Source of the DNA: Bacillus subtilis subsp. subtilis str. 168
Lineage (GTDB): Bacteria > Bacillota > Bacilli > Bacillales > Bacillaceae
Assembly: GCF_000009045.1 (NCBI RefSeq)
Contig: NC_000964.3
Span: forward strand, 248,001-312,000
Length of the DNA: 64,000 nucleotides
Direction of reading: 5' to 3'
A program made the position numbers and the translations under genes. Each line of letters starts with the position of its first letter. Position 1 is the stretch's first letter. The notes below the pieces were generated by a model. That model had not been told where the DNA came from. It saw only the letters and a program-made list of their open reading frames with translations, and did not search any database. Of the stretch, positions 27,562 to 29,321 are shown in pieces.

Positions 27562-27637
27562 TTCATGTTTTTATAGCGGAAAGATGGAATATGCTGTAAA
27601 ATGAAAATCAGCGTATAGGAAACGGAGGGGTTACAGC

Positions 27638-27676
27638 ATGGCATTCATTAGATTCCGAGTGACACGAATTCAATAG
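27638..27676 (+). CDS. Putative macrolide-sensing leader peptide MAFIRFRVTRIQ
   Basis: SD GGAGGGG 7 nt before ATG; R-F-R motif; lies upstream of a macrolide kinase. Confidence 0.7.
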   Translation: MAFIRFRVTRIQ

Positions 27677-27754
27677 TGAACAACTCTCGCCTGAATGCGA
27701 GAGAATCGGGATGAATCCGCCTATGTATGAGCCCTTATATGGTTATCAAAAAAG

Positions 27755-27778
27755 AGGGTGGCGTGCCTGCCCTTTTTT
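27755..27778 (+). terminator. Attenuator terminator in the mphK leader
   Basis: AGGGTGG/CTGCCCT stem (extendable by A6/T6 pairing) followed by T6, about 60 nt before the start codon. Confidence 0.6.
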
Positions 27779-27837
27779 GTGCCTTCAAGCATCCCTTCTC
27801 TCTACTGCAGGCCGGAGCATGAGAAAGGGGAAATGGG

Positions 27838-28758
27838 ATGACAAACCTTAACGAAAAACAGCTTATCACTGAGATTGTCGGGCTTGCACGCAGCCAAGGT
27901 TTGACGGTTCATTCTGAGAACGCGCAATTGAATGAAACCGGAATGGACTTTCAAGTTGTATTTGCCAAGGACGACACAGGTATGCCATGGGTGCTGCGAA
28001 AACCGCGGCGAAGTGATGTTGTGGAAAGAGCATCTGCAGAAGGCATAACGCTTGCCTTTCTCCGCGCGAATCTGACTGCTGATGTGCCGGATTGGAGAAT
28101 TCATACACCGGAATTGATCGCTTACCCCATGTTAAAAGGAACGCCGGCTGCTGGAATTGACTTGGAACAAAAGCAATATGTATGGAATATGGATCATCAG
28201 CCGCCGTCAGACGACTTTGTCCGCACACTTGCCGACATACTGGCTGAATTACATGGCACGGATCAAATATCTGCTGGGCAATCCGGAATAGAAGTGATAA
28301 GGCCAGAAGATTTCAGGCAAATGACAGCAGACTCTATGGTTGATGTGAAGAATAAGCTTGGCGTATCTACGACGCTTTGGGAAAGATGGCAAAAGTGGGT
28401 AGATGATGATGCATACTGGCCGGGTTTCTCTTCTTTGATACACGGCGATCTCCACCCGCCGCATATCCTTATCGATCAAAATGGACGTGTCACAGGACTT
28501 CTGGATTGGACAGAAGCGAAGGTTGCTGACCCAGCCAAGGATTTTGTTCTTTATCAAACCATTTTCGGAGAAAAAGAAACTGCCCGTTTGCTTGAATACT
28601 ATGATCAAGCAGGCGGCCGAATATGGGCAAAAATGCAGGAACACATCTCAGAGATGCAGGCGGCGTATCCGGTGGAAATCGCCAAGCTAGCTCTGCAAAC
28701 ACAGCAGGAGGAACACATCAATATGGCGCTGGAAGCACTTGGTGTAACATCGGATTAA
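27838..28758 (+). CDS. mphK: Macrolide 2'-phosphotransferase (APH/Mph family, YcbJ)
   Basis: NETGMDFQV, WVLRKPRR, HGDLHPPH, GLLDWTEA motifs typical of Mph kinases. Confidence 0.9.
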   Translation: MTNLNEKQLITEIVGLARSQGLTVHSENAQLNETGMDFQVVFAKDDTGMPWVLRKPRRSDVVERASAEGITLAFLRANLTADVPDWRIHTPELIAYPMLKGTPAAGIDLEQKQYVWNMDHQPPSDDFVRTLADILAELHGTDQISAGQSGIEVIRPEDFRQMTADSMVDVKNKLGVSTTLWERWQKWVDDDAYWPGFSSLIHGDLHPPHILIDQNGRVTGLLDWTEAKVADPAKDFVLYQTIFGEKETARLLEYYDQAGGRIWAKMQEHISEMQAAYPVEIAKLALQTQQEEHINMALEALGVTSD

Positions 28759-28796: not shown

Positions 28797-29080
28797 TACA
28801 AATAATAGAACGGATTAACAATCGTGAGGAAGAGCAAGTACGCATCAGAATGGAGGTTCAGAGAGTCGGTGGCAGGTGTGAACCGATCCTCCCCTGATGC
28901 CGAATGGGCTTCTGAATTGCTTTGCTGAACGGATAGTAGGCGATGCCGGGTTTCTCTCCCCGTTACCAAGAGAGGAGTATCGAAACATAGGTTTTCTGTA
29001 CTTAGAGTGAACGGCTGTATAGCTGTTAATAAAGGTGGTACCGCGAGACCCTCGTCCTTTGCATAGGACGGGGGTTTTTT
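28797..29080 (+). ncRNA. tRNA-Trp T-box riboswitch leader
   Basis: T-box AAAGGTGGTACCGCG at 29031-29045; terminator ACCCTCGTCCT/AGGACGGGGGT-T5 at 29048-29080; specifier UGG at 28905-28907. Confidence 0.92.
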
Positions 29081-29159: not shown

Positions 29160-29321
29160 ATGGTCATTGCAACTGATGATCTTGAGGTCGCATGTCCTAA
29201 ATGTGAAAGAGCGGGAGAAATCGAAGGAACACCTTGCCCGGCCTGCAGCGGAAAAGGTGTTATTCTGACTGCTCAAGGATATACGCTTCTCGATTTTATC
29301 CAAAAGCATTTGAATAAGTAA
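29160..29321 (+). CDS. rtpA: Anti-TRAP protein (53 aa)
   Basis: MVIATDDLEVACPKCERAGEIEGTPCPACSGKG with two CxxCxGxG-type zinc motifs; SD AAAGGAGG. Confidence 0.95.
   Translation: MVIATDDLEVACPKCERAGEIEGTPCPACSGKGVILTAQGYTLLDFIQKHLNK

Follow-up and report, generated by a model that had tools for sequence, protein, structure and literature searches.

The gene mphK (ycbJ) of Bacillus subtilis subsp. subtilis str. 168 is preceded by a leader of 229 nt, counted from the transcription start (~27609) to the start codon, which raises the question of whether and how this leader controls the gene. MphK is a macrolide 2'-phosphotransferase that acts poorly on macrolides with a C3 cladinose; its regulation was not addressed in that study (Pawlowski 2018, PMC5760710). 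We analyzed the leader within a window of 64,000 nt of the chromosome, in which the window coordinate equals the genome coordinate minus 248,000. Our results indicate that the mphK leader is probably a ribosome-dependent leader-peptide attenuator of the Listeria rli80/hflXr type. A sequence-only reading had proposed a leader-peptide attenuator with two tiers, transcription termination and occlusion of the Shine-Dalgarno (SD) sequence and start codon. Its core idea is borne out by homology to rli80, covariation in helix P1, a 3' end at 27780 and constrained folds, but the switch can only be kinetic, and an important helix, P0, had been overlooked. The elements of the leader and the gene are as follows.

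27624-27630, + strand: SD sequence GGAGGGG of the upstream open reading frame (uORF), 7 nt upstream of its ATG, also the 5' strand of helix P0; its partner in the minimum free energy (MFE) fold is 27730-35.
27638-27676, + strand: uORF MAFIRFRVTRIQ, 12 codons from the ATG at 27638 to the TAG at 27676, from translation.
27650-27658, + strand: Arg-Phe-Arg (+X+) arrest-type motif, codons 5-7 of the uORF, from translation.
27652-27660, + strand: 5' strand of helix P1, over the arrest codons; partner 27704-27712.
27684-27703, + strand: hairpin P2, CTCTCGC/GCGAGAG, seen in the MFE fold; pairing in the family is 85%, and 4 pairs have changes in both strands.
27700-27716, + strand: segment S2, the 3' strand of P1 and, by duplex energies, also a mimic of the mphK ribosome-binding site (RBS) (AGAGAAUCGGGAUG at 27700-13).
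27717-27736, + strand: segments S2b (CCGCCU) and S2c (GCCCUU), with either the uORF SD/AUG (P0) or the 5' arm of T1 (antiterminator AT1) as partner.
27747-27780, + strand: intrinsic terminator T1, consisting of an A-tract, stem 27754-61/27767-74 and U-tract 27773-78, from the fold and the 3' end at 27780.
27790-27803, + strand: anti-SD/anti-start strand CAUCCCUUCUCUCU, from the local MFE fold and duplex energies.
27805-27816, + strand: CUGCAGGCCGGA, remnant of the 5' arm of a second terminator, T2, complementary to 27716-22; its CAGGC is invariant in the Bacillus alignment.
27821-27840, + strand: mphK SD (GAGAAAGGGG) and start codon (27838-40), occluded by 27790-27803; probability of an unpaired SD, P(SD unpaired), ~0.25.
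27838-28758, + strand: mphK (ycbJ), macrolide 2'-phosphotransferase, an open reading frame (ORF) matching the Mph families in NCBIfam and 98% identical to relatives named MphK.

The best evidence against chance features is comparative rather than drawn from the single sequence. The leader is carried by all 13 Bacillus orthologues in the genome collection, and it also lies in front of mphK/mphI-type kinases in 18 further genomes of Bacillus, Paenibacillus and Alkalihalobacillus. Distant kinases with the leader include those of B. sonorensis, B. haynesii and strain NSP9.1 (59-61% identical), the MphI of Paenibacillus lautus (55%) and the enzyme of an Alkalihalobacillus (51%), and the uORFs in front of these distant kinases read MAYIRFRLNFV.., MAYIRFRFSLTK, MLDYSRLRSFRG and MAFYRLRFQG. 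A 22-base DNA pattern with three invariant blocks (AACGGAGGG, AATAGYG and CGGGAT) was derived from the mph leaders and run over metagenome contigs, where it identified 51 loci. About 35 of these have a uORF at the right distance with the motif [IY][RK]xR[FL] (e.g., MILIRLRLNTLCQ, MLYIKFRFKTLRG, MNNIYAVRLRFNALCR and MRYIRLRFPKNLCN), and the next gene in every complete case encodes either an HflX GTPase (TIGR03156, E = 1.5e-139) or Mph. The peptide MRYIRLRFPKNLCN, present at two loci (L053 and L070), matches in every residue the published leader peptide of Listeria monocytogenes hflXr, i.e., of rli80 (Duval 2018, Table S3, which also gives the ermD leader, MTHSMRLRFPTLNQ).

A covariance model built only from the 17 mph-linked leaders, and tested on loci pre-selected by the 22-base pattern, recovers the hflXr-linked leaders with E = 1e-13 to 1e-22 and the rli80 loci with 45.2 bits (E = 6e-8). 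Its sole site in the window is 27619-27741, at 113 bits. Approximately 15 of the 51 pattern loci have no uORF and are ignored by the model; we therefore regard them as chance matches and rejected them as family members. One locus, L068 (596-724), shows a weaker match (33.8 bits, E = 2.4e-5) and no recognisable uORF, and an ORF of more than 200 codons starts there ~100 nt after the point at which the pattern match begins (at the AACGGAGGG SD motif); this locus may represent a family member that has diverged or decayed. In the B. cereus group, mph (L021 250-712, 55% identical to MphK) follows a short intergenic region that holds the terminator of the upstream gene, and no uORF leader of the mphK family is present at that locus. 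The mphK leader has no match in Rfam 15 apart from a chance-level hit to PrrB_RsmZ (E = 0.27), three Listeria/hflXr-linked loci have none in the same database, and no copy of the leader was found among PLSDB plasmids.

The closest relative of the mphK leader by descent is rli80, which experiments have dissected as a transcription attenuator that depends on the ribosome and responds to lincomycin and erythromycin (Duval 2018, PMC6310831). Induction of rli80 is lost when the uORF ATG is mutated to ACG or when the antiterminator (+57..+103 and +116..+120, counted from the ATG) is deleted, and expression becomes constitutive once the anti-antiterminator (-7..-4 and +7..+29) is removed (Duval 2018, PMC6310831). 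Placed on the Listeria sequence, the anti-antiterminator consists of the SD-AUG spacer and the arrest codons, and the antiterminator corresponds to 27684-27736 in the window (P2, S2, S2b and S2c). The two leaders share AACGGAGGG, AAUAGUG and CGGGAUUGGUCU, a uORF of 12-14 codons with (F/Y)-I-R-(F/L)-R, and an intrinsic terminator that precedes the gene. They differ in the controlled gene, which is the ribosome-splitting GTPase hflXr (lmo0762) in Listeria and a drug kinase here, and in the arrest motif, RLR in rli80 and RFR in the mphK leader; P1 is also weaker in Listeria. In addition, rli80 has been described solely as a transcription attenuator. In the mphK leader, an RBS mimic and an SD/start hairpin occupy the place that a second terminator takes in many relatives. 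We found no description of the mphK leader, of its kinship to rli80 or of how mphK is regulated in the searchable literature; as to the leader, it may be listed in the tables of Dar 2016 or Lin 2005.

The sequence-only reading had noted that the uORF codons ATTCAT (27643-48) and ATTCCGA (27652-58) are complementary to TCGGGATGAAT (27706-16) around the hairpin CTCTCGC/GCGAGAG (27684-90/27697-703). All of these elements are in place, and in the free MFE fold 27643-49 pairs with 27710-16 and 27655-58 with 27706-09 around the hairpin. The register of P1 that is conserved across the family is 27652-60:27704-12. In the alignment of 32 leaders, 91% of the P1 cells are paired, and sliding the partner by 1-3 columns reduces this value to 51% or less. 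The pair 27658:27706 is A:U in 16 leaders, U:A in 11 and G:C in 3. The exchange of A:U for U:A is a synonymous change of the second Arg codon from CGA to CGU accompanied by the matching change in the partner strand, which argues that peptide and helix are both under constraint. CGGGA in S2 is nearly invariant, and AACGGAGGG, in the region of the uORF SD, is identical in 32 of 32 leaders. The motif [RK]-x-[RK] is present at the uORF position in all leaders examined except those of three species of the B. velezensis clade. In these species, B. velezensis, B. siamensis and B. nakamurai (L013, L014 and L016, upstream of 1501), the leader retains its RNA helices, P1 having a compensatory G:C, and a 4-nt difference near the start places the uORF in another frame (MASQNPVFALIK) without Arg-x-Arg; their T1, at -15 to -19 kcal/mol, is much stronger, and the RBS is less occluded. 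We also considered a 46-codon ORF at 27711-27851, which runs through T1, as a second uORF and rejected it; its AUG is missing in B. atrophaeus and the velezensis clade.

The helix overlooked earlier, P0, pairs the uORF SD, spacer and AUG (27624-42) with 27719-35. The spacers vary widely between lineages and the partner strands follow: cognate duplexes have a mean energy of -18.1 kcal/mol vs -14.4 kcal/mol for non-cognate ones, and none of 5000 permutations was as low (p < 1/5000). P0 is the main anti-antiterminator. Because the finished, folded leader hides its own uORF start, leader translation must begin during RNA synthesis. The 5' domain as a whole (27620-27745) folds with z = -2.55. RNAalifold returned only part of P1 and T1, together with a long-range pairing of the uORF SD with the anti-SD, for an alignment of 14 species, and no structure for that of 32 leaders; given this poor yield, we counted the pairs of the named helices and compared cognate with non-cognate duplexes. 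In B. tequilensis the leader (L007 1287-1509) has decayed: the uORF is cut to MTSMRIR, ~25 nt including T1 are deleted, and the helix at the uORF start is weak (-7.6 vs ~-18 kcal/mol elsewhere). The mphK gene of this species may be naturally derepressed.

The next question is how an open or closed 5' domain could decide the fate of the transcript. The terminator read from the sequence as AGGGTGG/CTGCCCT-T6 at 27755-78 is indeed there, lengthened by an upstream A-tract. T1 folds with -13.3 kcal/mol (z = -2.41; 6 of 200 shuffles as good) and is found in 12 of the 13 Bacillus orthologues and in many hflXr leaders. A simple consensus terminator scan of the window missed it, probably because A:U pairs draw the T-run into the stem. 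The proposed antiterminator pairing of GCCCTT (27731-36) with GAGGGT (27754-59) also proved possible; it is the MFE structure before the 3' arm of T1 exists, and only with the uORF region blocked. AT1 is in fact bipartite, with CGCC (27718-21) pairing with GGCG (27760-63) in addition, for a total of -13.7 kcal/mol, and this form recurs in nearly all T1-bearing leaders. P0 and P1 covary, and AT1 overlaps both P0 and the 5' arm of T1, i.e., these structures are mutually exclusive. We folded the nascent RNA at increasing lengths with or without a blocked ribosome footprint. In the absence of a ribosome, 27717-36 stays within P0 and T1 can fold. A block over 27641-69 makes AT1 the MFE structure up to 27766. 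The energy penalty of AT1 relative to T1 is 7.4 kcal/mol for the free leader and 4.5, 2.3 and 1.5 kcal/mol when the 5' edge of the footprint lies at 27641, 27638 and 27632, respectively.

For the translational tier, the pairing that had been noted between CATCCCTTCTC (27790-800) and both the SD region and GGGATG (27835-40) is reproduced in the local MFE fold at -17.2 kcal/mol. The anti-SD strand 27790-803 forms duplexes of equal energy with the mphK RBS and with S2 (27700-13), -15.9 kcal/mol each. The ensemble cost of opening 27822-42 is 12.9 kcal/mol for the free leader, 8.7 kcal/mol with 27641-69 blocked as by a stalled ribosome and 5.4 kcal/mol with 27622-69 blocked, where the translation initiation region is occupied as well. 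When a block of 28 nt is slid along the leader, only start positions up to 27641 (P site no further than codon 6) reduce the opening cost and, with it, the AT1 penalty; for start positions of 27645 or beyond, a ribosome at the stop codon among them, the two values are again those found without a ribosome. Thus, Arg-Phe-Arg at codons 5-7 is the last position at which a stalled ribosome can flip the leader. A similar fall in opening cost is found in most subtilis-clade leaders and in B. atrophaeus, and none in the hflXr-linked leaders. The constrained folds that had been suggested as a check agree with the proposal in part: blocking the uORF lowers the AT1 penalty and the RBS-opening cost, but T1 and the SD hairpin remain at equilibrium. 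Since both are in the MFE structure in every state, the switch must be kinetic rather than an equilibrium one.

On this basis the leader could work as follows; in this scheme we infer the stalling at Arg-Phe-Arg, the identity of the inducer and the kinetic order of folding. Without drug, the 12-codon uORF would be translated quickly and the ribosome would depart, after which the uORF SD/AUG (27624-42) would pair with 27719-35 (P0) and the arrest codons (27652-60) with 27704-12 (P1). P0 and P1 would together form an anti-antiterminator domain that allows T1 (27747-78) to form, and on any read-through RNA the mphK SD and start codon would be kept locked by 27790-803. With a macrolide-type drug, stalling would occur at Arg-Phe-Arg, Phe6 occupying the P site and Arg7 the A site, and the ribosome would cover ~27638-27669 and hold P0 and P1 open. 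The freed segment 27718-36 would then capture the emerging 5' arm of T1 (AT1), so that RNA polymerase reads through, and the freed RBS mimic at 27700-13 would capture the anti-SD before the real RBS is transcribed, so that mphK is translated.

Several known systems share parts of this design. The vmlR and tlrB leaders each unite a uORF with a terminator and a hairpin that sequesters the SD, and both require a NusG pause at TTNTTT (Takada 2022, PMC9226507; Yakhnin 2019, PMC6851288). Like the mphK leader, vmlR and tlrB (yxjB) have a uORF, a terminator and an SD-sequestering hairpin in one leader, and in the same organism; ribosome stalling in vmlR and tlrB is antibiotic-dependent, with RYR as the motif of tlrB, and the first stem-loop of vmlR holds the uORF and acts as an anti-antiterminator. 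The analogy drawn in the sequence-only reading therefore holds for the uORF, terminator and SD hairpin, but not for the pause: no separate NusG TTNTTT motif is present, the only + strand TTNTTT in 27609-27840 being the U-tract of T1 (27773-78). In tlrB, moreover, the stalled ribosome masks the terminator directly, whereas the mphK uORF stop lies ~75 nt upstream of T1, and an antiterminator is therefore needed. In ermC, segment 1 is part of the uORF; segment 1 and segment 3 are alternative partners of segment 2, and pairing of segments 3 and 4 occludes the RBS. The mphK leader resembles this arrangement in that the equivalents of segment 2 (27700-13) and segment 4 (the mphK RBS) are computed to bind segment 3 equally. 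Unlike ermC, it has a terminator and antiterminator between segments 2 and 3, and its uORF start is sequestered (P0). Expression of other macrolide kinases is macrolide-inducible: mph(A) is controlled by MphR(A), a TetR-family repressor, and mph(C) lies downstream of msr(A) and its leader. This control by a repressor or by the msr(A) leader is unlike the uORF leader of mphK.

Where does the translational tier come from? Most hflXr leaders, as well as those of the licheniformis clade and of Paenibacillus mphI, have an intact T2 (CACAGG..CCUGUG followed by U6-8), located at the apex of the helix in which the resistance gene's SD is sequestered. In the subtilis and velezensis clades the 3' arm and U-tract of T2 are lost and CAGGC (27808-13) is retained. 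The computed fall in RBS-opening cost, seen in most subtilis-clade leaders and in B. atrophaeus but not in the hflXr-linked leaders, would fit a replacement of T2 by a translational lock. The pairing 27716-22:27809-16 is conserved, with C:G, U:G and U:A variants, and is best read as the remnant of an antiterminator for the lost T2. Tandem T1 and T2 were observed at L015, L018-L020, L022, L025, L027, L028, L033, L035, L063, L067 and L072, and in the two-terminator relatives a conserved CUGCCU after S2 is complementary to the 5' arm of T2. We consider it about an even chance that Bacillales have placed an old, exchangeable cassette for macrolide sensing, of which the mphK leader would be one copy, before two unrelated resistance functions, ribosome splitting by HflXr and drug phosphorylation by Mph. 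Such a cassette would consist of a uORF with (F/Y)-I-R/K-x-R, P0, P1 and one or two terminators, and in the B. subtilis clade an RBS-mimic translational switch would have taken the place of T2.

Published transcript maps bear on whether the leader is made and terminated as an RNA of its own. Its likely 5' end is defined by two features.

27597-27602, + strand: likely promoter -10 element TAAAAT, read from the sequence.
Near 27609, + strand: likely transcription start, the published 5' end of ncr214 (genome 275609), 7 nt past TAAAAT.

A consensus promoter scan does not list this promoter because its -35 element is poor. The short RNA ncr214 spans genome 275609-275716, i.e., 27609-27716 of the window (Irnov et al. 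2010), and segment S95 is labelled "5' of ycbJ" (Nicolas et al.). The 3' end of ncr214 at 27716 coincides exactly with the 3' edge of the P1 domain and not with a terminator; possible explanations are the limited read length in the 2010 data and a stable product left by decay of the folded 5' domain. The sequence-only reading had named the absence of a 3' end near 27778 as the outcome that would speak against it. Such an end exists in published Term-seq data at genome 275780(+), window 27780, 2 bases beyond the U-tract, in both wild-type (coverage variation 16.25) and NusA-depleted cells (14.88) (Mandell et al. 2021).

Several results weigh against the attenuator. The termination efficiency (%T) at 27780 is 0 in the untreated wild type, and the end was left out of the terminator list, for which the cut-off was %T >= 5 (Mandell et al. 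2021). Its coverage is close to the noise threshold. The published Term-seq data do not show efficient termination there. Once the 3' arm of T1 is present, T1 wins in every state, AT1 being the weaker of the two, and the narrowest footprint (27641-69) gives only partial effects on the AT1 penalty (4.5 kcal/mol) and RBS opening (8.7 kcal/mol). The SD hairpin has z = -1.18 with 18 of 200 shuffles as good, i.e., it does not by itself stand above chance. The equilibrium P(SD unpaired) in strain 168 is ~0.25 with or without a ribosome block, and coupling is visible only in the opening-cost measure. As folded here, the model would thus depend on co-transcriptional kinetics. Covariation is not significant for AT1 (p = 0.13), the elements being too conserved, or for S2b with the 5' arm of T2 (p = 0.34). 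The velezensis-clade leaders have kept the RNA but lost the +X+ motif by the frame change. Finally, no report of mphK induction was found in the searchable literature, with Dar 2016 and Lin 2005 lying outside that search.

Some of these points would be expected if only the transcriptional tier, T1, were regulated and the SD/start hairpin were a constitutive damper that stalling does not open. The constancy of P(SD unpaired), a local hairpin no better than shuffles, the hflXr-linked relatives without coupling between stalling and RBS opening, and the description of rli80 as a transcription attenuator alone are all consistent with such a damper. We nevertheless think it unlikely, since S2 pairs with the anti-SD as well as the RBS does, the RBS-opening cost falls by 4-7.5 kcal/mol only for a ribosome on codons 2-6, this fall extends to most subtilis-clade relatives and B. 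atrophaeus, and these same leaders have lost the second terminator that is sited here in relatives. We give limited but somewhat greater credence to the possibility that the leader is a general sensor of translation stress, with lincosamides, phenicols or slow translation also inducing mphK. Any ribosome held on codons 2-6 suffices in the sliding-block calculation, rli80/hflXr responds to lincomycin as well as erythromycin, and chloramphenicol induces the B. subtilis uORF attenuators bmrCD, vmlR, tlrB and ytbDE. However, [RK]-x-[RK] is kept despite the nucleotide change from CGA to CGU that the partner strand compensates, which argues for selection on the peptide, and mphK is not among five loci reported to be chloramphenicol-induced.

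Strain 168 might also have no working switch, in which case T1 would mainly end the garD operon, ncr214/S95 would be a by-product or a separate small RNA, and the uORF would be a relic. No terminator lies between the garD stop and T1, the Term-seq end bears the label "garD+219", and %T is 0 at 27780. In addition, G27659 disrupts one conserved P1 pair in strain 168 and B. stercoris, and the leader of B. tequilensis has decayed. Even so, this seems very unlikely to us: the leader accompanies mph or hflXr even behind other upstream genes, as in the velezensis and licheniformis clades, Paenibacillus and Listeria; strain 168 has every element intact, the uORF among them, and the family model scores 113 bits there; and a separate 5' end has been mapped at 27609. 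A ribosome-dependent attenuator of the rli80/hflXr type remains our preferred reading.

The gene order around the leader is gudD, ycbG, garD (end 27561), leader, mphK/ycbJ, Trp T-box (28815-29062), rtpA and ycbK. Downstream of the garD stop (27561), the first terminator-like structure is T1. Because garD lacks a terminator of its own, transcription running on from the garD operon would come into the leader upstream of the uORF. Directly downstream of mphK is the T-box leader (RF00230, 126 bits). Its terminator spans 29045-29078, and a published Term-seq 3' end at 29081-82 has a %T of 74 in the wild type; the 53-codon anti-TRAP gene rtpA (29160-29321) and then ycbK come next. The exact MphK protein is found in B. 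subtilis chromosomes.

The gene mphK is flagged as a resistance gene in almost every genome report on a B. subtilis probiotic or biocontrol strain. If the attenuator reading is true, mphK would be silent without a ribosome-stalling drug, and its presence in genomes would be read differently. The leader would add one more drug-sensing uORF attenuator to vmlR, tlrB, bmrCD and ytbDE in the model Gram-positive bacterium. The link to rli80 defines a leader family that is missing from Rfam and could help to locate, in genomes and metagenomes, inducible genes of the macrolide response. Leaders with one terminator, with two, or with a terminator and an RBS mimic constitute a natural series for the study of attenuator evolution, and the cassette, if the proposed history is true, would be a natural example of an attenuator that changed its output tier and kept its sensor.

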